Origin: Oikopleura dioica | Lineage: Eukaryota > Animalia > Chordata | Assembly (NCBI GenBank): GCA_907165135.1 | Contig: OU015570.1 | Coordinates: 248,001 to 312,000 of the forward strand | Reading direction: 5' to 3' | DNA length: 64,000 nt | In this document: positions 3 to 52,655 of the stretch, one piece after another | How the letters are laid out: every line of letters begins with the position of its first letter | Position numbering within the stretch: position 1 is the first letter of the stretch | Program-made: the position numbers and the translations under genes | The notes under the pieces: generated by a model | What the model was told of the DNA's origin: nothing | Seen by the model: the letters and a program-made list of their open reading frames with translations, nothing else | The model's database searches: none

Positions 3-1100
3 AAGTACTTTTTTCGAAAGACAAACCAAGGCCTTGAGTTCGACCCCGCATTTGACGTTACTAACATCCAGGAAGCTGCCCAAAAGACTGCTCGAGCTGA
101 CCATAAGATTGATGTCGATAAAATAAATGAGATCATTGTTATGGACAACCTTGCCACAATTCTTGACCGAATTGACGAGTCTGAAAAACAAGAGGAGACC
201 AAGTACCGGCCACCACCCTCTGACTCTAAGCCATCTGGATCAACTCCACGAAATGGAAATGCTCAGCCCCGAGGAAGTGCTCAGCCGAAAAAGGAACCAA
301 CTAACGATCGCTCAAAATGATTTGGACAAGTGAAGATGAAGACCCCGAAATTTGACGCTCAACTTCCAGTTGAAAATTTTATTTCGAACCTGGAGCTCTA
401 CGGAAATTGCTCGAAGATTTGCGACGAAGATCTTATCAGTGTTGCCCTGTCCCAAATCCTGATGGAGGAAAGTGGAACTTCTCTCGTCGAAGCAATCACT
501 GGAGAAGAAAAACAAAACTGGAACAGCTTCAAGGGTAAGCTGGTTCAAGTTCTGGGAAAAGACAAAGAGCACTACAAGCACATGTATACATCGTTCCAAC
601 GAGGTCAGGAGACACAGCAAATGGCAGTCACAAAACTTCAAGCCTTCTTCAAGAAAGGATACGGAAAGCTCAATCTTGATGCTGCAGATGAATCAATTAT
701 CTGTGACCGATTTATCGAATGCCAAGAGCCAAGACTCGCTGAACTGCTCCGACGTGAAAAATCCTTGCTGACACTCCGAAATATCGCTCAACGTGCCATG
801 GAACTGGAGAGAAGCTTCTTCAAACGAGAAAATATCTTCGTCGCGTAAAGCACTTCAAATGCGAAGGAATCTGAAATGGCCCAAATCTGCTCTCAACTGA
901 AGGAAATTATCTTTGCTGCGAAGGAGGCAGCAAAGGAAAAGAAGAAAAAGGGAAGATCGAGAATCCCCATCAACAAGCTCCAAGGACACTGCATTTCATA
1001 CGTCCGAAATAACCGATGCCGATTTGGCGAAAAGTGCAAATACCTTCATGCGGAAGACGTACCAAAGGAAGTTGAGGAAATAATCAAAAAGGAGGCATGA
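3..1100 (+). pseudogene. gag: gag (capsid-like region plus C-terminal CCCH zinc finger), two in-frame stops
   Basis: One frame from 3 to 1100: KYFFRK...RSK*(TGA 318-320)FGQVKMKTPKFD...IFVA*(TAA 846-848)STSNAKESEMAQ...KEA*(TGA 1098-1100). Track ORFs 330..848 and 876..1100 lie in this frame. C-x8-C-x5-C-x3-H at 990-1049. Confidence 0.8.
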
Positions 1101-4100
1101 CTATCAAGAGTCATTGAAACGTGTGAATATGCTCACTTTGCACCGGCCTCGCTCAAATTTGTTAAGATTATGCTCAACGGACTTAAATTTCCCTGCCTTA
1201 TCGATAGTGGCGCAAGTAGAACATGTTTCCGCTCAGATGTTCTAGATCTATTACCGTCAACTATCAACAAACAAATTCCATCTACAATCATGCTCAAGTG
1301 TGCGAACTCAGAAGTCTTCAATGTTAAAATGCTCAGCTCCCCAATTGACGTCAAATTCGAAACAAGCTCTTCGCCACTAAGATTGAAGTTGGATCCGCTC
1401 ATCGTTCAAAATTTATCGTGCCCGATCATTTTGGGAATGGATGCTCTCAAGGGGATAACGATCGGAGAAAAATCAGTCACTTTATGCAATAAGAAAATTC
1501 CAACAATAGATCCGAACTCAACTGATTTGTTCTTAACTGGTCTTATTGAAATCGACAAGAATTCTGGTCGTGAGAAAGAAGATTACGAAGCTTTCTTGAA
1601 GAGGCGATCAGAACAAGCCCAGAAAATCAATTTTGTTCCAGCTATTGGTTCTTATGGTGCAACTGACTCGAGACAAAAAGCTCAACTTGACGAACTGATT
1701 CAAAAATATCGACTCAGCTTCAATATGGACTCCGATGATCTAGGACGTCTATTCGGCTATCGATATTCGCTCCCGCTCTATGACAAAACAAAATCTTCAC
1801 ATCAACCTCCACGGAAAATTGCAATTCACCTACTGCCACAAGTCAGAGAACAAATTTCCACATGGAAAAAGCTCAACGTTATCCAAGAAACGCAATCATC
1901 ATTTAACATTCCTTTGATAATTCTTCGAAAATCTGATTCTTCTATCAGAATCTCACTTGATGCGAGAATGGTGAATGAGTTATTGCAAAAAGATCGCTTT
2001 CCATTACCAAGCATGCAAAGTGTTTTCACCTCTATTGGAAAGAAACTCAGTGGTAAAGAATGTTTCATAAGTTCAGTGGATTTCTTTCGTGGCTATTGGC
2101 AAGTGCTCATTAACGAAAAAGATGCACACAAAATGGCATTTTCATACGAAAACCAGCATTACCAAACTAATAGAATGCTCTATGGTTCTTGCAATGCTCC
2201 TGCCTGTTTCTCAAGAATAATGAATAAGCTGATGAAACACGAATCAATTCTTCTTTATCTTGATGATTTGGTGATCATTGACAACAACTGGGAAGACCAC
2301 CTGAAGGCACTTGAATTCGTTTTCAAAACCTGCCTAGAACATGGACTCGTTCTTAGTGCCAAGAAATGTCAACTCGCTAGCACTGAACTTGACTTCCTTG
2401 GTCACAGAATAACGGCTGATGGAATCAAACCGCTCAGAAAGCATCTAGAAGCGATTGAAAAATTATCACCACCCCGAGATAAAGCTGAACTTAAGAGATA
2501 TCTTGGAATGGTTAACTTCAATGTGAAATTTCTAAAGCGTGGAAGTGAAATTTTGGCTCCACTTTACCGTCTAACATCGGCAAAAGTGAATTATGAATGG
2601 TCTGAGATTCACCAAAACGCCTTCGAAAAAGTCAAAGAAGAACTTCTAAAAGAGCCAACATTAGCGCATTTCAAACCTGGATGTCAACTTGTTCTCGTCA
2701 TAGACTCCTCTGGATATGCAGTTGGAGGAACACTGTACCAAGTTCATAACGATCAATTTGCCGCTCTTGGATATTTCAGCAAAGCTCTAACACGACCTGA
2801 TCTTAAACGTCCAAAGAGAGTCAAAGAGCTCTTTGCACTTTGCTGGGGAATACAGTTTTTCGAGTACTACTTGATAAATTGTGAATTCGACTGCTATGTT
2901 GACCATAAATCCTTGTTGTATCTGTTCCGAGAATCACGAAGAAGAAAATTGGACATAAAACTATGCAATGTTCACAACTATCTTCTTGCGTTCAACTTCA
3001 CGATCATTCACAAAAGCGGAACGAGCCCAGAAATGGCTTCTGCAGATTTCTTTAGCAGACTTCCAAAATCAAAAAGCTCTTACCTTGAGAAACTCTCGGA
3101 AGATTTTTTCGATGTCGACGAAACAATCCTTGCGTTGTCAACTTTGTCAACTGACAATGTCATCTTTTCGTACGAAAATCGATCATTCACTGCTAACGAA
3201 ATGGCTGGTGCTCAAAACGCCTGCTCTGTTACAAAGAACCTTATCGTCAAAGCCGAATTAAACAAGTCACAGAAAAGACTGATGCTCAAAAACAATGTCC
3301 TCTACTCGAATGATAGACTCGTTCTCCCAGGCAACATTGCCGATGAATTTATTTCATATTTGCATGTCATAACAGCTCACTCCGGAAGTCAACAGCTCCT
3401 TCAAATGCTCAAGAAATTTTTCATCAGCAATATCCAGCAAAAAGTTCGATCAATTACAAGCTCATGTGAAACATGCATCCGACTCAAGCCGCTCAAAGGA
3501 ATGCGACCTTCGCTCATAAAGGATCGCCAGTTCGCTCAACTACCCTTTGAGAAAGTTCACATCGACCTCGTCGATTATGGAAGACCTGACGCTTCAGGCA
3601 AACGCTACTTGCTCACTGTAGTGGATAGTTTAAGTGGCTACCTCGATGGAGAAAGTTTATCAAACAAATCGGACAATCTTGTTGCAAAAGCCCTCCTGCG
3701 AATAATACTTCGGCATGGAATATCACAGAATTGCATTTCCGATAACGGAAGAGAATTCGGACCAAAAACAAGAGAAATTCTCGACCGATTTGGAATACGA
3801 CATAGTACAACCAGCGCTTATAACAGTAAGTCGAACGGAAAATGTGAGAGAATCCATCGCGAGATCCATCAGAAGCTCAAGAACCAATTTGCAACAAATC
3901 GCTCCTGGTCCGAATTCTGGCCACTGGTTCAATACTTTCTTAACAACGCTCCAAAAGGAAGTCTTGATGGTCTTTCAAGTAATGAAATCGTATATGGGAG
4001 ACAATTTCATATTCCTCACTCACTGAAAGAGCCAATCATTGAGAATGTCCAGCCATTCACAAAAGCTCTGAATGAATATATGAAGAAACTCCACCCAGCA

Positions 4101-14900: not shown

Positions 14901-15126
14901 AAGAAAAACGACGGTACTGAAAATGTGACGAAAACAACAAAAACATGTCTTTTTCTCGTTACATTTTCAATAAAATTCTAGAGATTTTTTGTTTTACTTA
15001 TTTCACCCCTTGAGTTTCCTACCATTTCACCCGCGGAGCGGGTGTATTCACTGGATTTATCTCTAAGAAACAAACTTAATCAGAAAATAAACCTTTTTAA
15101 ATCCTATTGTGTACTTTTTTTACTTA

Positions 15127-15512
15127 CAGTTGGTTTCCTAATTTCCGGACTAATTTTGTCCCCTGGTTTCCAAAAAAATGTCCGGAAATTTGGGTCACCG
15201 GAAAAAGTTTTATGTCCCACCAAGTATTCTTAATAAAGCATTGCTACAGGGTCAATACAAAGAGATTATGAAAGAAAAACCACTTAATGACCTTAAGTTT
15301 TTACTCTTCTTCTTCAACCTCGCGAACAAGCTCAGCTTGCGCCCAAAAAGAAGTTAATTTAATCGTAAATTGATTCCTTTTTTAGAGAAAATAATCGCTA
15401 ATTAATACAACTTTGAAAAAAAGTCCGGAAATTTGGACAATGGTCGATTTTGTAGTGTCCCACTAAGATGCCTTAAAATCTGAAAAATGTCCGGAAATTT
15501 GGAAACCAACTG
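15127..15512. mobile_element. Tc1/mariner-type MITE nested in the 14907-15674 MITE
   Basis: TA-CAGTTGGTTTCC...GGAAACCAACTG-TA; absent from the paralog at about 7590. Confidence 0.85.
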
Positions 15513-15712
15513 TATTTGCCCTTTTACAGATGTTCTCACGTCGTATGAAATTTTTCATCTAAATATCGCTTTTTCGAAAAAGTTTCTAGAACCAGCTGAT
15601 GAACAACAACATGTCTCTGTTTTCGTTACATTTTCAGTGAACTCGTTACATTCGTTACATTTTCAGTGGCGACCAAGAAAAACGATAATTGAAAGTCATA
15701 TCTATTTGATAA

Positions 15713-15904
15713 ACTACTATCGTGGATCTTTTTTAGGGCGCCTGTGACTCATTAAAAAAAGAGGAAAGTCAAGGCCACGTTGCAGGCTCGCCTTTCCTCA
15801 TTTGATTTGAACTCGCACATCTAGAGAAAGTCTTCGTTGTGCGCGCTGGCTTTCCTTTTTTTTTATGAGTCAAAGGCGCCGTAAAAAAGATCCACGATGG
15901 TAGT
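15713..15904. mobile_element. MITE, ~40-bp TIRs
   Basis: ACTACTATCGTGGATCTTTTTTAGGGCGCC / GGCGCCGTAAAAAAGATCCACGATGGTAGT. Confidence 0.7.
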
Positions 15905-16368
15905 CTTCAAAAATTTTTTCGGTCCAAGAATCATGGATTTTTAAGGTTCAAGTCCCGAGAAATCATCAATTTACTGAACTTGTTCCAGTCTTTTTGTGAG
16001 CAAGGCTTTCAGGAGCGTCTACGGTAGACTCTACCAATCACTGATTGGCAATCAGCGCGCACCGGAAAACAGAAAATCGCCACAAGCATCGTGGATTGAA
16101 AAAACAACTCCCAAAAATTCATTTTTGACGATTGCAAGGTGCGCGAGTAAAAATTTTTGGCTGCCGGGACAAAACCCTGACACCCCCTCCGAGCCGAGCA
16201 ATCAACCTCACTTTCCTACTAGACCTCCCATTGCGGCGCTCAAGAGCCAACTACGCTCAATAACTCTCAAATGCCCTGCTCATCTTTTTCCTATGCGAAA
16301 GTCCTGCTAGAACAACTGATAACGCGGAATTTTCATTTCATTATTTTATTTCATGATCTTTTCATTTT

Positions 16369-18629
16369 TTATTCTACAGGAAAAGTTAAAACAGGCGGAA
16401 AGAAAACATTTGTCAGTGGAGTTCCAAGTTGTTTGGTGAGTGGAATGATATTTTCCTGGATAAAATCTTTCGGAGAATTATGAATGTAGATGATAATAAA
16501 TTGAACCCAATCGTATTTATCTCGGACTTCTTTCGCCCGAAAGTTAAAATCCTCGTTTTCAACGCTGAGTGAATTCTCAAATTTGAAATCAAAGATTTTG
16601 TCACTCGCGTTTGCGATAGAGTTCGAATTATTATCAAATAATTGTTTTAGTTTACTGTTAATCGATTCCGAATAATTGTTCGTTAAATTAAATTCCTGGC
16701 TACATAGATTTCCGTAAAGATTCCATCCATTGCGAGAAGAACTATTTACATAAGTAGCAATAAAATATTTAACAAATTGACGAAAACCAGGCTGAAATGA
16801 TTCAGAAAAGGTCAAAATGTAGTCGTTCAGAGCGGCAAAGAAATGGTCAAGATAAGAAGGATCAAGGAATGGCAGTCCTTTCATCAAATTAAAAAACTCG
16901 CGAACTTCCGGATTTTTTGAAGGGAGAAATTTCGTAAATTCTTTTAGCTTTTTTTTTAATGATTCCAGAAGATAGTAATAACATTGAGAAACAGTCCCAT
17001 CGAACTGTTTTTCAAAAGAATGTTTAACTCCCGGTTCAAAATCAGTAAGAAGAAAAGAAATTTGTAATGGGCGGTTGAATCTCAGTTGATATCTGTCTTT
17101 TAACAAGCAAAATAATTTATCATATAGTTCAATCTTGCGAGATTTCATAAAAGCGAAGATAATTGGATAAGCTCGACTTTTTTCAGGATCAGATTGACAC
17201 GGAAGGCGCGCTGACATAATATATAGTTGTTGAAAATCAAGATTTCGCACAGGAGTCCATGTCCCGTCTCCAAATACTGGTGAGAATTCTGGCATATGAT
17301 AATCTTTTCTAGAAGAGTGATTCATAAGATCAAGCTCATGCTCTAAATAAAAAACTGTCATATCCTCATTTTCTACTTGTAGAAAATCAACTTGCACATC
17401 TTTTTTAAGCTCTCGATCGAATATGAACATTTTTTTATTTAGCTCAGGAACTTGATCTTTCGCCACACTTTCTGTTGATCGCTGTATCGTTTTTTTAACA
17501 AGTTCCGAAATTTTCTTTTTATCATAGCCAATCTCATCATTGACTCGTCCTGTTGAAATAATTTTATTTATACCAGAAGTATTGAATACTTTCCGAGTCT
17601 GGTTTTGGTGTGAACTCCTTGCGATATCTTTATTGACACTTCGAAAAGACTGATTTATAATAGCAAGAGGCAGTTTCTCGCAAGAATGATTATTTTCAGC
17701 AGTAATAAGTTCATAATTTGATAGGTTATATCTATCAGAATACTCGAAATTGAATTTGTATCTTTTTCGCATTTGAATTTTGACTTCGGTTTCATTCTTA
17801 CGTTTTTTTGTTTCTTTGAGTTCGGTGATGATCATTTCTTCCTTCATGCATTTAACTTTGGCTTTGGCTTTACATTTCTTTTCTGAGCACTCAAGTAAAA
17901 TCATGGATGCAGAACTGGCGCTCTGAATGACGAGTTTTCGTCTGGTATTCTTTTCTCCATGCTGTATCCACCAAGCAACTCCGTTTCTTCGGTTCGATTC
18001 TGTAATTCCGATCAACTCTCCGCGTTCTTCAGAGCCTCTTATTTCATCAGTATCAAAAGTTTCAAGGGTCGTCACTTCCAACCTTTCGGGATCCCGAATG
18101 TTTCGGGATTTCCCGAATGTTTCGGGATTTGTCCCGAATCTTTCGGGATTTCCCGAATCTTTCGGGATCGCCCGAATCTTTCGGGAGTTTTGTTGAGGAT
18201 AACGTTAAAAAAAGTGGCATAAATGCCGAATTAGGGCATTTTACTAATCAAAAAGATCACTCTATCTGCCTTCGTCGACTTCGATGGTCTAAGAAGGCCA
18301 GACTTTTTATAAATGTTGAATTTGTAGTCAAAGAGAATGTGTGCGCTCCGCGTCTGTTTTATAGAGTAATTCATGAGTTATAGATCCATTTTTTCGAGTT
18401 AATTATTTTTTTTCCTTCGCGCCTCCATTTTCTCCAATAAAGATGTACTTTAACGTTACTGTTTGGGTTTAAATATTTTCTTGGACAAAAATTATTGAAA
18501 ATCATCCCCGAAAGGTTCGAAGACAAAAAGGCCCTTTTTTACTGCGAACGTTTCGGGAAATCCCGAAACATTCGGGATCCCGAAGGGTTGGAAGATTCAA
18601 CCAGTTTCAAGTTGTTTTTTCAAATCCAT
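16369..18629 (-). CDS. Mutator (MULE) transposase; true start at 18629, interrupted by a MITE
   Basis: N-terminal C-x4-C...HxC finger; FGDGTW (D), LTDFE (D), TNNYSESIN (E); CxxH reads CYYY. Removing 18067-18602 plus one TSD copy gives MDLKKQLETFDTDE in frame. The element's own TIRs were not found. Confidence 0.9.
18067..18602. mobile_element. MULE-type MITE, 536 bp
   Basis: Perfect 9-bp TSD AGTTTCAAG at 18058-18066 and 18603-18611; TIR core CTTCCAACC(T/C)TTCGGGATCCCGAA; partial second copy at about 24615-24786. Confidence 0.92.
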
Positions 18630-19471
18630 TTTTTGGATTTTTTAGAATGAGAGAAGAAAAGAAATGGTCCCGGCTTATATGCGAAATTTTCGCGAATCAG
18701 CCATTCTATTTTTAGGAATGAATATCCCAGTATCGAACTAGAAAGGCGGCAAAAAAACGTGACAACTCTTCGTCGAAGAGTCATCGAAAACGGCCGGCTT
18801 TGGTGGGAGAAAATTCATTCATCGGACAGATTACACTTCTATTTACGCGCCTCTTTAATTCGCAGCCTTATCGCCACTCCATTCGAAAATTCCAAATCCT
18901 CATTGTCTCCTCCATGATATCAGCAGAAAATTATCAATTCTAATTGCCCCTACCTTCGGTAACCCTAACTAACCCTAGCCTATCCCCCTCGGGTGAAACT
19001 GTTCTGTCATTTTGCGCGGTGCCCCCTAACACTAACCTTAAAATTAAGCCAATCATTAATTTATACTAATCATAGATAAAATTTGCTCATCCATCAGCAG
19101 AGTCTTTCAGAGGGAAGAGAGAAGCGAATTTGAATTGAGCGGCTCTTACAGCGAGACTATTGCTCGCGAGCGCTACTCTGCAAAGGCTGGTAGCGAGGTG
19201 CAGTATCTCGGCTGGCGGGGGGTGTCAGGGTTTTGTCCCGTTTCCCAAATTTTTGCAGACTTTGAATCCTCGTCAAAATTAACGTTAGTCCAGCATTTGA
19301 AATTTCCAAAATTTCAAAAACTTCACTCTTATCGAAAAAATCCGACGGCACTGAAAATGTCACGAATGTCACGAAATTGACCACTTATTTCGTGACATCG
19401 TCAGTAAAAGGGTTCGAAAAATTTGAGTTTTGCGTGCAGTAAGAGTTGGGCCCCGCCAACACAATGAGTTA

Positions 19472-19881
19472 CAGTTATTTATGGAATTTGTGGACATTTT
19501 TTGTCCCCTAGTTTTCTGAAAAATGTCCACAAATTTGATAAAGAGCCTCGAAAAAAATGTCCCAACGAACTTGTTTAAATTTTTTCCTAGAAAGAAAATT
19601 TGATGATTTTTCTCAAAAAATAATGAGAAAAAGAATACAAGATTGAATCTAAAGACGTAAATCTAGACAAAAATTAAGATTTTTGACGAAAAACAGTTCT
19701 TTGCAGGTAAAATTGGCTTCAATTACGAAAGTAAGACCATAAATTTAGAAGTAAAAGATATCAATTGAGAAAAAATGTCCACAAAGTTGATACCCTCTTT
19801 TTTTGAATATGTCCCAAGAAAACCCCTTATAATCTGAAAAATGTCCACAAATTTGATGTCCACAAATTCCATAAAAAACTG
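19472..19881. mobile_element. Tc1-type MITE family, copy A (others at 39893-40289, 47023-47758, 57889-58242)
   Basis: TA-CAGTT(A/T)TTTATGGAATTTGTGGACA ... TGTCCACAAATTCCATAA(A/T)AACTG-TA in four copies. Confidence 0.88.
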
Positions 19882-20583
19882 TATCTATGTTATGAGTTAA
19901 AATAATGGAAGTCAATTTTTCGAATTTCGTGACATTTTCAGCCAACTCGTGACATTCGTGACATTCGTAACAGTTTCAGTACCTGCCAAAAAATCACCCC
20001 TTTACATATCATTTTTACGAAAATGACATATAATTATCTAAAGATTTTTGCATTATTAGAATCGCCGTAAAAAATTCTCCAAGCTGATCGGGCTTGATAA
20101 GTATCAAGGCCCTTTTTCGGGTACCTAAAAATTTATGCGATATCCATTAATATGAAGCAAGTCTTATATGTAGCAGCGGTTTTTATGGGACGTAGTATGT
20201 GTAGCATGAAGCAGGGAATTTTTTTAGGGATGTTACACGTGAAGCATGGAGCAGCTACATATTGCTTAATTTGGAATTCTGTTCCTGTAACGACATACTC
20301 TAGACTGTCTAGGAGTCCCAAAATTTTGTTGTTTCTTATTTTTGATGAGTTTATATTCGCTGTTATGGCTTAACGTATTCGGCTCTCGTTAGTTATGACC
20401 TTTAGAGCCAGCATTGAAATTTTTACTTAATGCATAAATAACAATATGTATTTTACGGACGAATAAGACCAAAGACCGAGTTCTGTTCGCCTGGTTAGTC
20501 ACAAGACATAACCTGTGTGACTCTGCTAAATATAATATAATTAATATTCCAAAGGTTAAGCCGTCAAAGGTTGTCCGGGACAG

Positions 20584-23946: not shown

Positions 23947-25533
23947 ATCACTCGGTATTGTATTTTCTATGTTTATTTTTACTTTTCGTTAATTTTTTTT
24001 TTATAATATTTTTACGTTAACTCTGTCGGTCAAGGTATGAGCCGAGCGGCGCGACTTCGCCCCTCGTCATAATTTTCTCAGTTCTAGCTCCCAGCCCTTA
24101 TTATCACGCGGTCTAGGGGGATGGTCCTGGGCGGCCAATGAGAACACCGTTTTCGAGGCAACGGATGCTTCCAAGGTCGAAAACATAATAACATGTCCGC
24201 AGTAACGGACTTTGCGCACAATCTCCTGTGAACCTGTTGATGAGAACGACAACAGTTGATCGCGGTTGTAGATCAAGTCAGTGTTACGGAATCCGGACAA
24301 GCCGTTGCGCACTAGACTTAGGCTAGCCCCATATCAGATTTTTCAAATTTTATTTTCGCGCATTTTCAACGAAAGATTTTCGTTGTAAGATTCCGAAAGG
24401 TTTCTTATCCCAAGTTTTTATCAAGCCTTGATAGTGTAGCACTCCTAGAATCTCCATCTTGCAGCAATGACTACGACAATGGAGGAACTAAAAGCCAAGA
24501 TTCTTGTGGCTCAGACTAAACTCGTTACCTACACTGATCGCCCTGCCACCACGGATGCCCAGGTTCAGGCCAAAGCTGACCTAGAAAAGGAATGCCAAAG
24601 CTGAACTCGTTCAACTAAATAAAGATGTACTTTGACGTTACTGTTTGGCTAAAAATATTTTCTGGGATAGAAACTATTGAAAATCATCCCCGAAAGGTTC
24701 GAAGACAAAAAAGGGCCTTTTTTACTGCGAACGTTTCGGGAAATCCCGAAAGATTCGGGATCCCGAAAGGTTGGAAGATTCAACCCTAGATTCCGTTACT
24801 TTAGGACACAAGCAGCGGGGCCCTGTGGCCGGAGTCACTTAGATTTGAGTGTTTTTGAAAGAATTAATCAACGAAGTTAGGGTAAGTGGGCTAGAGAAAA
24901 ATTATCTCAGCGAGCCGCGCGCAGCGAGCTACCACACCGCGCTTCACCAAAAGCCTTATCATTATTATAAAATTGAAAATAAAATTGATTTACTTTCATG
25001 ATCACCCAACTTCGACTTGCTCTCTCTCCTCTGTTTGGGCCGAGTCTGAATCCATAGTTGTGAACAAGGTCACCCAACTTTTGTTTGATCCATTTATTGA
25101 CCATCTGATCAGCTGGCTAAAATAATAAATTATTAGTCGTGAGGTATTCCTTGATGTTCGCGTTTTTCTGGATCTCATCTCTTATCAGATTTACCTACTT
25201 TTATCGAGATTAGCAACCTTTTTTGAGTTCAAATTCAAAAAACTTAATGACAACAAAATGCTCTATTCTTAATCAGAAACAAGGATTCATTTGATAAGAA
25301 AACCACCAAAAAGCATAACCATCATGGATGACAATGAGCTCAAATTAGCTTAAATTTATGCTTATGAATCACTAAACTCACTGAACCGGTTTTTACCGGT
25401 AGAACGTCATCATAGCTCACGTTTATCAAAAAATGTAAATCTTGAATTTTTGTATCTGACGATTTCAGTCAACTTTGAGGCATCAGATACTACTGATAGC
25501 ATCAAGGTTATGGGTAGGGTTAGTTAGGGTTAC

Positions 25534-32854: not shown

Positions 32855-34160
32855 AGTGACAGTCGTGGCAGTACTGCCAACAAATTTCGAACTCTGTTCA
32901 AGAGTACCCTTGGAAGAAAGCTAAGGGTCGATTCTATCAACACACCGAAAAATTCAAGATTTCACTTTCAAGGGGTCGAATGTGATAAATATTTCGGCAG
33001 GCAGCCGAATGGAATATACAAATAAGACTCGTTTTTAGGAAAAATATTTGGGTACGAGCCGAAACAAAAACAGTATTTGATGTCTTTTGAGGAGATTATC
33101 ATCCTGATTTGCGCTGGTAAGTGCATTCAATGAGTGTGCCTTATCAATTTTCACCTAAAAATCTCGAGTTATTTTCTGTTCTCATACTCAGAAACTCATC
33201 TCTGGCTTCATTCTTCATTTCGCAAAAATAAAGGAAGCCGATGAATCATCGGCGATGATAAAAAATTGAAATCGTAGTATCTGCTTTAATTAAGGTTAGG
33301 GTTAGGGGCACCTGCAAAAGTGACGGAACAAATTATCCGAGGGGGATAGGCTAGGGTTAGTTAGGGTTACTAAAGGTAACCCTAAGTAACCCTTGACTAG
33401 ACCCCGGCATCTTAGGACCTAAGGGGCGAAGCCCCGTGGTCAGGGAACTTGGATTCCTCGATTTCTGTCATCTTGCTCGCTTTTTTGCCGAAATCTTATT
33501 GCTAGAAACGACCTTAAAAGTGAAAAAGATTTCGGTAGCCTGCCGTAATATTTTTGTGAAAAAAGTGAAAAAGTTTCGGCTGTTACCGAAATATTAATCA
33601 GAAAATAAGCTCACCATATTTCGGTAGTTTTACCGAAACATTTTTCCATACTACCGTTCTACCGGTAAAAACCGGTTCAGTGAGTTAATCGATTCATAAG
33701 CTTAAATTTAAGTTAATTTGAGCTCATTGTCATCCATGTTGGTTATGCTTTTTGGTGGTTCTCTTATCAAATGAATTCTTGTTTCTGATTAAGAATAGAG
33801 GAGCGGTTGAGCATTTTGTTGTCATTCTGTTTTTTGAATTTGAACTCAAAAAGGTTGCTAATCTCGATGAGAGTAGGTCAATCTGATAAGAGATGAGATC
33901 CAGAAAAACGCGAACATCAAGAAATACCTCACGACTAATAATCTCTCACTTCTGCGGCAGTGAATTCGCATCGCTTCGCTTTCGCTCTTTGTAAATTCAA
34001 TTCGCTTCGCTTTCGCTTTTTATGAAAAATTTTCGGGAAAATTTTGCTCAAAATAAATCGTTCTAAGAGTTGAATATTTTTTATTTTTATTTATAAATAA
34101 GAATGTGCACAACATCCTCAGAATTGCAATAATTGCCCTTTATTTTTCAAAAATAGTAAG

Positions 34161-49287: not shown

Positions 49288-50781
49288 GATATTCAGTAAA
49301 GGATTAAATATAATGTTGTAATACATATTATTAAACAAATGTCTAGGGCCCTACGGTAAGACTCTAACCCGACCAAAAATAACCTACATGGTCGAAAATG
49401 ATTGGGAAAATATGGGCACCGAGCCACCGACCCATCTGTTTAAATTTGGGCAAAATCTAAAGGTCGACTCTGTCCTTGTTCGTGTACCCTGACAAAATCC
49501 CGTTATTCGAAGTTTCCTTCAATTCAAGAAGTTTCCTTCAATTCAAGCGCAAAGCGCACACTCATTCAATGGTTTTGATTTTGAATTTTTGTAACGCCGT
49601 TACAATTTCGACTACTTGTAACGTAGCAAGGCAGAGCGACTTTGACAATCGCTAGGCAAGGCAAGACAAGGTATATATGACTTAGGCAGAAAAAGGCATA
49701 AAATTGAGAAAACTAAATTGCGGGAAAATAATAATATAGGCTCCTCGCTTAAAAATTCGGGTCGAAAAAACCTCCGATATTGCCGGTTTTCACCTTCTAT
49801 TCTTAGAGTGAACTCCGGGGAACATTTTTGTCAATTACGACTTTATCGTAGCTCCTCCCCAAAAAGGTTGAAAATGCCATCAAAATGCCGAAAATGGCCA
49901 ATTTCAGAAATCAAGTGATTTTGCCACCTACGAGATTCATTTTTAAAAATTGTTTTGTATGATTCGAAAGTGCATAAAATTCTCTTTCGAATAAAAGGGG
50001 TCTTGTTTTTGCAAAATGATATCTAAACCATTTTTTGAGGGTTGAGCATACTGAAAAACAGTGTTTTTCACATTGAATAAATCGAATTAAAAGATTGCCA
50101 GATAATCAAGCAACTGTGTTTCTCAACGTTCCCTTTCCAAGCTTTAACTCATTTTACCGCGGTTAATTACAGCTCTTATATAGAAATGTGCCAAGACTAA
50201 GGGTCTTACTTTAGTACCGTGGTTTTCCATCTTAAGAGCGTTTTTCGGATGACAAGCCTCGCTCAAATCGCTTATAAGTTGGAAAATTTTCAATGAAGGT
50301 AGGATGTCAGTGGGATTTTCCATTTTTTCATTGAAAAAATTGTTTTTCGAGATCAGATCATTGTTCCAGAATTGGGCTCGAGCGCATTTCGTGATTCTGA
50401 GTTCATTCGGTAGTAAGGAAAAATGTTTCGGTAAAACTACCGAAATATGGTGAGCTTATTTTTTGATTAATATTTCGGTAACAGCCGAAACTTTCTTTCA
50501 TTTTTACCCCCTTTTTGAGCAAAAATGTTTCGGCAGGCTACCGAAATCTTTCTCACTTTTTAGTCGGTATCAAGCAAAAACATTTCGGCAAAAAAGCGTT
50601 GACGATCATATAATCTCATCGATGCTTTTGGAAGAAAATTATCATTATGATATTATCTAATTGCCCCTACCTCGGGGCTTCGCCCCTTCGGGCCTAAGAT
50701 GCCGGGGTCTAGTCTACGGTTTCTTAGGGTTACCTTCAGTAACCCTTACTTACCCTAGCCTATCCCCCTCGGGTAAGTTTG

Positions 50782-51330
50782 GGGTGCGCGTCGATCGCTA
50801 CGGTTTCGGGGTTTTGCGTCGATCCCTACGATGCGTCGATCGCTACGGTTGCGTCGATCCCTACGGTTAAAAATGACTCATGCCTAGGAAGGAAAGATAG
50901 GGTCTGCAACTTGTCTGCACGTGAACAAAAAATACTTCTCAAAGACATCTTTATGTGAATAGTTAATTGAATTTTCTTGTAACTCTAACGGTTTTTCGTC
51001 GAAGGGTTGGTATGCTCTTTATAATTTCGGGAAATATTTTGCTAAAATTTGTCATTTTTCTGGCAAAAACCCTAAAAAGGCAAAAATAAATTAAGCAAAA
51101 ATCAATTCTTTAAAATCACTTCTCATCAAAGAGCCAATAAAGTATAAACAGACGATCACTCAACAAAGAAAAGCTGTAACCCATTAGATATTTAATGATA
51201 AGTTGCAGACCCTATCTTTCCTTCCTAGGCATGAGTCATTTTTAACCGTAGGGATCGACGCAACCGTAGCGATCGACGCATCGTAGGGATCGACGCAAAA
51301 CCCCGAAACCGTAGCGATCGACGCGCACCC
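50782..51330. mobile_element. MULE-type MITE, ~130-bp TIRs
   Basis: Perfect 9-bp TSD GTAAGTTTG; TIR GGGTGCGCGTCGATCGCTACGG; splits a dispersed repeat that is intact at about 43245-43395. Confidence 0.92.
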
Positions 51331-52655
51331 GTAAGTTTGTTCCGTCATTTTTGCTGGTGCACCCTAACCCAAACCTTTATTTTAACAAATACTACGATTT
51401 TAATTTATAACTATCGGGTTCCACCATTTTTCCTAAATAAAGCCCGAAAAATGATCTTCTTCTACAGTGGGTTGCGCAGGTACTGCACCCCCAAAGAGCG
51501 GGTAGAGGGTGCAGCAGTCACGCAATCACTTTGAGCAAGTCTAGAAAGAAACAATAGAAAAAGTGCGGGCGAAGGGTGCAGCAACGCCGCAATCACAAAG
51601 GGTGCATTACCTGCGCAACCCACTCTCATATGAGAACATAAAATTACTCGAGATTTTTGAGGTGAAAACTCATCAGAAGCCAAACTCATTCAATGCACAT
51701 ACTAGGGCTCATCAGGATGAGAATGGCGAAACCTGCCGAAACATTATTGCTCAAAAGACATTAAATTCTGATTTTTGTTTCGGCTCGTACCGAAATATTT
51801 TTCCTAAAAACGTGTCTTATTTGTAAGATTCTTTCGGCTGCCTGCCGAAATATTTATTACATTTGACCCCTTGAAAGTGATTTATATTTCGGTCGCTTTT
51901 ACCGAAACATTTTTCTATACTACGGTTCATTCATTCCTCAAAATTTAATTCCACTGCAAAGATGGCAGGAAACGGGAAAAAAATTCACATTTCCTTGGCA
52001 GAGAAGAAAAAATATGGGCAGATTCTAGTGAAGGCGCCAAAACGAAAAGATGGTAGGAAGACTGTGATGGAGCTTTATCGAAAGAAGAATGATGGAGGAA
52101 GATCTGATCGAGCATTTCCTGGCGCTTCAAATTGATGAAACACAAGCCGCGACCCCGAGGGAGATTGAAGAAGAGCCTCAAGTTCAAGTGACAGAGAGCA
52201 CCGACACTGCAAACCTTTGACTTCGAAATGTCCAGAAAAGCAGTCAAAGATTACAGATATTTTTAATAAATGATTCACTGTGAGTCTAAAAATTTTTTGA
52301 CTTTGAATAAAAATCTTGAAAACGGTCTTAAGTTGGAATTTTGCAGATGACATCATTTTCACAATATACGCAAAAACGCTCTTAAGTCGGGCGCTCTTAA
52401 GATGGAAAACCACGGTATTCGAGCAAAAGTCTAGAAAATCGTGCGTTTTCGGGAAACACTGACGCCGGCCGCCCCCGGCCGCCCTGACTGACGCTGGCCG
52501 GTCCATCTTTTAAAAATTTTTTAATTAATTTTATCAATGTTAAATGAATTTTTATTGTATAAAAACATATTTTTAGGGTTATCTTACCAAAGTTTGACCA
52601 TTACCTCCTCGCTTAAAAATCGCACGATTTTTTATAGCCCGATTTTCAGGGTTTT

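Follow-up and report, generated by a model that had tools for sequence, protein, structure and literature searches.

Does a MITE lodged in the coding sequence of a transposase gene of Oikopleura dioica act as an intron, removed through splice sites carried in its own termini, or does it simply interrupt the gene? The locus lies in a window of 64 kb (the whole stretch of DNA that we analysed, with positions counted from its first letter), and the initial annotation favored the former, in the shape of an introner-like element that had landed in a transposase of its own superfamily, where splicing could gate activity. We found much of the anatomy behind that proposal to be real. The locus as a whole is nevertheless probably an ordinary nested insertion, in which a Mutator-type MITE recently inserted in an apparently single-copy MULE gene, and what is new here is the filled/empty polymorphism of this MITE along with a His-to-Tyr change in the transposase.

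A Mutator-type transposase gene interrupted after nine codons

The interrupted gene is on the minus strand and leaves an open frame of 570 aa (16369..18081), the first 15 nt of which are MITE sequence, while removal of the element plus one TSD yields an insert-free ORF of 571 aa that runs from the ATG at 18629 and starts MDLKKQLETFDTDE. Evaluating the 570-aa frame against the Pfam MULE profile gave 16 bits (E 0.017), below the 27.6-bit cut-off, and an exhaustive HMMER search with the transposase revealed 208 relatives, those bearing PF10551 being found at E-values of 1e-10 to 1e-20. When nine better-scoring relatives were scanned with Pfam, PF10551 lay above the cut-off over the matching region in seven, three of which also possessed a FLYWCH finger. 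ESM Atlas features placed the protein in MULE clusters (0.96, with 203 shared features), the DDE triad (D272, D347 and E472) fell in conserved alignment columns, and the AlphaFold model had a confident core at residues ~215-555 (pLDDT 80-97) that matched ZSWIM1/3, FAR1-related proteins, IS256-family transposases and K. lactis alpha3, all members of the Mutator superfamily. Because the HMMER relatives, ESM features, DDE alignment and fold agree, we assign the host gene to the Mutator-type transposases. The gene is apparently single-copy, with contigs over the ORF at a depth of 78-80 in DNA run X29. In its C(2)H motif, here CYYY, the His kept by 11 of 11 aligned relatives is replaced by Tyr370 (codon 16972..16974, minus strand), and this transposase copy, although its DDE residues are intact, may be catalytically impaired.

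The first nine codons, MDLKKQLET (18603..18629, minus strand, with the ATG at 18627-18629), lie on one side of the element and the rest of the gene on the other. The gene strand reads ATG GAT TTG AAA AAA CAA CTT GAA ACT, then GGTTGAATCTTCCAACCC, and at the far junction, after 536 bases, it reads ...GGTTGGAAGTGACGACC, then CTTGAAACT TTT GAT ACT. Relatives reveal how the uninterrupted gene begins: the closest, P0003 (64% identical), reads MALAEKFKT-FDSDEIRGS, with MNFQGELNK-LDSAEIRGS in P0002 and MNFEEELEK-LDSARLRGS in P0016. In all three, which come from short marine-metagenome contigs, nine residues precede the conserved block just as in MDLKKQLET-FDTDEIRGS, and none has an insert. The contigs that encode P0003 (L001 and L002) are uninterrupted at the insertion point and keep as TATATAAG the TATAAG box that stands ~45 nt upstream of the ATG in the window (18674..18679, minus strand). 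Because the relatives share the leader length and the upstream box and lack the insert, the ATG at 18629 is the ancestral start and the element lies inside coding sequence. Relatives, fold and start-codon alignment thus uphold the claim that a MITE sits nine codons into a Mutator transposase.

Contigs L001 and L002 (ENA marine metagenome) are of separate interest as a relative of the transposase element, with 70-75% DNA identity and the same promoter and start. They represent an internal-deletion derivative, in which the coding sequence jumps out of frame from ~residue 95 to ~residue 367 in the numbering of the window protein.

Anatomy of the element and its family

The element, here MITE-A, spans 536 bp (18067-18602, minus strand in the gene sense), is non-coding and runs in the gene sense from 5' GGTTGAATCTTCCAACC to GGTTGGAAGTGACGACC 3'. 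It is flanked by a perfect 9-bp TSD, AGTTTCAAG on the plus strand, of which the copy at 18603-18611 encodes codons 7-9 (LET) and the other lies at 18058-18066. Its TIR sequence is CTTCCAACCYTTCGGGATCCCGAA, and the two arms are 50 nt each, that on the gene-sense 5' side (18545..18594) being 92% complementary to, and pairing with, that on the 3' side (18075..18124). Five subterminal palindromic units, CCCGAAWNWTTCGGG, are spaced at 19-21 nt over 18093..18185, and a sixth lies at 18562-18576; with a seventh in a partial copy (24745-24759), the unit CCCGAAnnnTTCGGG has 7 matches in the window vs 0.13 expected, and these palindromes are likely to be transposase-binding repeats. All ORFs of the element are spurious (≤89 aa). 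A scan of MITE-A against Rfam for a structured RNA gene returned sub-threshold hairpin matches only, and this candidate was rejected.

These features, namely TIRs, a 9-bp TSD (the Mutator length being 9 bp, range 8-11), short length, lack of coding capacity and multiple copies, are those of a Mutator-type MITE. The existence of a 536-bp MITE with a perfect 9-bp TSD, as first annotated, is therefore secure: the coordinates and 50-nt TIRs hold, an empty-site contig agrees with them, the TSD and mobility of the element are far beyond chance, and that DNA contig is an independent confirmation.

MITE-A belongs to a multi-copy family, as its depth in X29 is 700-3100 vs ~80 over the transposase gene. 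The window holds a partial copy with one terminus (24618..24785, plus strand), 93% identical over 168 nt, which ends ...GGAAGATTCAACC and so in the same GGTTGAAT terminus as the full copy; within the window it sits outside any recognisable gene. Past that terminus and 168 nt, the interior of this copy (24467-24785) is swapped for unrelated sequence that includes a 45-codon ORF (MTTTMEELKAKILVAQTKL...). Searches of metagenomes for further copies, by TIR and by paired subterminal repeats, gave 0 matches, and an autonomous MULE sharing MITE-A termini was not found within the 64-kb window. Comparing MITE-A with the flanks of the transposase gene and with other coding elements in the window revealed no similarity, and its origin as a deletion derivative of the host transposon was rejected, the two having no common sequence. 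The claim that the MITE landed in a transposase of its own superfamily therefore survives in part: a genuine MITE with a Mutator-length TSD does lie inside a MULE gene, but, as MITE-A has no sequence in common with the gene flanks, TSD length is the single feature that joins the two as kin.

The insertion is polymorphic

Among the Logan contigs from DNA run X29 that aligned on 15700-19700 was one that joins 18057 to 18603, skipping 545 letters with 9 ambiguous letters that correspond to the TSD, and that is thus an exact empty site, although the contig has just 21 letters on its shorter side. Its depth was 40.8, where contigs over the transposase ORF stood at 78-80 and haplotype-specific ones at 44-45. 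Because the empty site is present at about half the local depth, the MITE-A insertion is recent and polymorphic, most simply explained if it is heterozygous, or present at half frequency, in a gene that is apparently single-copy. A retro-copied spliced form was considered as the source of this contig and rejected, as the skip measures 545 nt and falls at the TSD, whereas a spliced form would miss 527 nt between the proposed sites.

A probable ordinary nested insertion

Taken together, these observations point, as our favored and probable explanation, to a real but ordinary nested insertion. A member of the multi-copy MITE-A family would have inserted between codons 9 and 10 of the MULE transposase gene, and the insertion is still segregating, as the same DNA sample contains filled and exact pre-insertion alleles. 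Without splicing, translation would end at MDLKKQLETG*, where an in-frame TGA (18597..18599, minus strand) follows the first codon of the element, so full-length transposase is most likely produced in small amounts or not at all from the filled allele. Mutator elements prefer the 5' ends of transcribed genes, as Mu does in maize, and an insertion ~30 nt into the coding region, near the promoter, would fit that preference. The GT..AG pair would be a by-product of the TIR sequence (GGT...CTTCC) rather than an evolved splice module. The downstream ORF could likewise be intact without splicing, because the insertion is young and the gene of a host transposon is under no host-level selection.

The neighbourhood is consistent with this nested insertion, being transposon-dense and gene-poor; other nested MITEs are present, and among the ORFs of the window none has a Pfam match outside transposons. 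An unspliced, disruptive insertion is fully expected here, because the target is a TE gene in a region without cellular genes, other MITEs are nested nearby and an intact allele is extant. Were a MITE found in an essential host exon, its persistence would itself argue for splicing, but that argument falls away in a TE gene. An intact empty allele coexists with the filled one, so that finding the insertion need not mean that splicing makes it tolerable.

The nested insertion provides a clean example of a MITE that arrived very recently in a genome commonly called transposon-poor, and, because both alleles are visible, it shows that Mutator-type transposition was recently active in this Oikopleura lineage. 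Filled/empty heterozygotes also represent a natural experiment on whether a permissive spliceosome removes a fresh, poorly signalled MITE, the step that a transposon-origin model of rapid intron gain in Oikopleura needs, and an unspliced outcome would mean that exonic MITEs are not automatically rescued.

Possible splicing of the element as an intron

The best surviving of the other explanations is the one first proposed, that MITE-A is removed as a 527-nt GT-AG intron to give a 577-aa transposase with VTTLET after residue 9, an introner-like arrangement in which splicing would tune output; we consider it unlikely, the evidence as a whole weighing against a self-masking intron and against splicing as a gate. 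Its arithmetic is correct. On the gene strand the element starts G|GTTGAAT and its far end reads GGAAG|TGACGACC, which would set a GT donor at 18600..18601 (minus strand, CTG|GTTGAA), the sole GT able to bypass the stop, and an AG acceptor at 18075..18076 (minus strand, GGTTGGAAG|TGA). Removing 18601..18075 takes out 527 nt, leaves an 18-nt footprint and gives MDLKKQLETVTTLETFDTDE... with a 577-aa ORF, all exactly as annotated. The element boundaries of MITE-A are GG...CC and the proposed splice sites GT...AG.

The initial annotation also held that a symmetric TIR offers GT and AG at the same offsets in either orientation. As far as the offsets go this is so, since GGT and CTTCC are present at all three MITE-A termini seen (both ends of the full copy and one of the partial copy), and because they are kept at both ends the 1+8 splice offsets are valid in either orientation of MITE-A, making the 18-nt in-frame footprint a real property of the termini. 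The symmetry itself stops short of the tips, where the outermost 8 nt agree at 4/8 positions (GGTTGAAT vs GGTCGTCA). The related claim, that TIR pairing would juxtapose the splice sites, fared similarly: the predicted transcript fold (TIR stem of ~55 bp, MFE -199.3 kcal/mol, z = -10.3) does bring both sites together, but both lie inside that long predicted duplex and would be sequestered by the same stem.

Splicing of MITE-A would find a favorable setting in its protein and its host. The AlphaFold model gives residues 1-28 a pLDDT of about 25, and because this N-terminal tail is predicted to be disordered, a six-residue insert would probably be tolerated. Splicing in O. dioica is reported to be permissive, with 11-12% non-GT/AG introns and rapid intron gain (PMC8008620, PMC4122922), and among larvaceans the annotation's appeal to known transposon-derived introns is borne out by Fritillaria, which has MITE-derived introns (PMC11282704, PMC13326754).

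Against this stand the signals themselves, which we scored by consensus matching, as the window lacks recognisable non-transposon genes from which to build a local intron model. Measured against CAG|GTAAGT, the donor matches at 4/9 positions (-3, -1, +1 and +2) and at none from +3 to +6, while the acceptor is AAG|T without a pyrimidine tract, the 20 nt upstream being 35% pyrimidine. The intron would also be long, its 527 nt exceeding tenfold the O. dioica median of 49 nt (PMC8008620). That the frame is restored counts for little in favor of splicing, as the prior is ~1 in 3: 8 of 44 AGs yield a frame of >500 aa when paired with the single usable GT, a random symmetric terminus would have GT in its first 6 nt, CT in its first 15 nt and a multiple of three, all together, in ~5.5% of cases, and, once G[ACG] donors, likewise in use in O. 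dioica, are counted, there are 21 G[TACG]..AG pairs that restore an ORF of >500 aa. The argument from survivorship is likewise removed by a polymorphic insertion in a TE gene, and the family evidence comes from one full copy and one partial copy, the latter outside any recognisable gene.

Transcript searches weighed on neither side. Bulk oligo-dT RNA runs (X4-X6) had 0 reads at 90% likeness over 15700-19700, which may reflect another lineage or a silent locus, and next to no words of the stretch were present in 18 RNA contig runs. Word-indexed protein searches that might have revealed the product of a spliced mRNA gave no match, either for the complete ORF or for its first 144 residues.

Somewhat more doubtful still is the larger claim that would follow, namely that MITE-A represents, in a chordate, a canonical GT-AG introner with the same 18-nt footprint either way, an intron gain caught while segregating, on which transposase output would depend through splicing. 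Were it spliced, it would still be one more case of known transposon-derived introns, with the segregating allele as its special feature.

Other possible routes to rescue, and possible RNA silencing

The filled allele might also be rescued otherwise, either by another cryptic G[TACG]..AG pair or by a transcription start inside the TIR that reads out into the gene, giving a truncated protein from Met60, though we regard this as improbable. The 21 donor/acceptor pairs that restore an ORF of >500 aa leave room for the first route, but the alternative acceptors are likewise without a pyrimidine tract. Outward-reading promoters are known in Mu TIRs, as in Mu-suppressible maize alleles (hcf106::Mu1), and a read-out transcript would be translated from Met60, the first ATG met after the MITE end. 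Such a product may not work, because it would be missing residues 1-59, a part that relatives conserve (FDxDEIRGS..., NGVAWWIQ).

Least probable as an explanation of the locus is RNA silencing, by which transcription through the 50-nt TIR hairpin would yield dsRNA and small RNAs against the MITE-A family and the transcript, much as maize Mu killer is a hairpin-based silencer of Mu: the predicted stem and the position of the element directly downstream of a conserved TATA-containing promoter would suit it, but the hairpin is MITE sequence, so that the transposase of another copy would not be targeted, and silencing is in any case compatible with, and not exclusive of, the nested insertion that we prefer.

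Other repeats in the window

Several other repeats surround the transposase gene or recur across the window. A very high-copy repeat, with a word depth in X29 of 23,494 vs about 80, occurs in the transposase 5' leader (18916-19049) and in two other elements, at 33325-33445 and at 50670-50781 / 51340-51400. Its sequence, ...GGTTAGGGTTAGGGGCACC...GGGGGATAGGCTAGGGTTAGTTAGGGTTAC..., resembles a telomere repeat and carries a palindrome at its center; the copy in the transposase leader is without the second half, and GGGGCAATTAGA comes after the repeat in three loci and in metagenome contig L001.

A second MITE (50782-51330), with 141-nt TIRs (97%) and the TSD GTAAGTTTG, is nested in a non-autonomous element of ~950 bp (inside 50410-51923) that has subterminal inverted repeats of CCGAAAC type. 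That splicing of this MITE would also give a multiple of three, which the initial annotation had pointed out, is meaningless, as the element lies in repeat DNA and not in a coding exon. A third MITE-like family, with the TIR CTGAAAATGTCACGAATGTCACG and a length of 640-740 bp, has one copy on either side of the transposase gene, at 14907-15647 and 19347-19983; the two are similarly oriented and some 4.0-4.4 kb from each other.

The transposase gene is also bracketed by a 48-nt inverted repeat (81%), the core of which, CGGGACAAAACCCTGACACCCCC, is unique to 16151-16198 and 19207-19254. This repeat, internal or degraded, may be what is left of the TIRs of the host element itself; no TSD was found beside it, and a search for the host MULE termini as 20-nt TIRs with a 9-bp TSD revealed nothing convincing. 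Just downstream of the transposase gene lies a small hairpin element (15713-15904) with 48-nt arms that are 92% complementary and 96 nt apart.

Comparison with known systems

The idea that splicing decides on active transposase has its model in the Drosophila P-element, where germline-specific splicing of the third intron gates the transposase. The likeness to MITE-A is one of idea, as the P-element intron is integral and regulated and MITE-A is foreign and on one allele. Closer in kind are exonic insertions in maize: Purugganan and Wessler, in a 1992 paper cited in PMC4158355, are said to have described Ds, dSpm and Mu insertions spliced from maize transcripts. As in those cases, which gave leaky alleles, cryptic sites in the termini of MITE-A could remove most of an exonic insertion and leave a small in-frame footprint, but splicing in maize was demonstrated by cDNA, and for MITE-A it is a possibility raised by the sequence.

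Introners, which are transposon-derived introns, are described in algae (Micromonas, Aureococcus) and many other eukaryotes (Huff 2016, Gozashti 2022, PMC9860276; PMC11282704), with Oikopleura not mentioned in PMC9860276. MITE-A resembles them as a short DNA transposon with TIRs and a TSD, with GT and AG in its termini and with a short in-frame footprint either way. Introners, in contrast, possess hundreds to thousands of spliced copies in unrelated genes, with good splice sites often completed by the TSD, whereas MITE-A has one exonic copy seen, weak signals and a TE gene as host, its likeness to introners being read from its letters.

Within the same animal class, the MITE-derived introns of Fritillaria borealis are described as non-canonical (Henriet 2019, as relayed in PMC11282704; PMC13326754). 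According to these accounts paired TIRs draw the intron ends close to each other there, as they might in MITE-A, and intron positions are lineage-specific. The same accounts describe introns that are mostly AG-AC or AG-AT, served by a Fritillaria-specific modified U2AF/snRNA system and fixed in host genes. The intron proposed in Oikopleura has GT-AG and not AG-AC or AG-AT ends, and it sits on a polymorphic allele.

The closest likeness is to nested insertions of Mutator-type MITEs. MITE-A departs from the usual case in that no autonomous partner with matching TIRs was found in the window and the target MULE is of a different family. It agrees with that case in its TIRs, its 9-bp TSD, its non-coding and multi-copy nature, the empty allele, its position near the 5' end of a gene, its TE-dense surroundings and the presence of nested MITEs nearby, such as that at 50782-51330.
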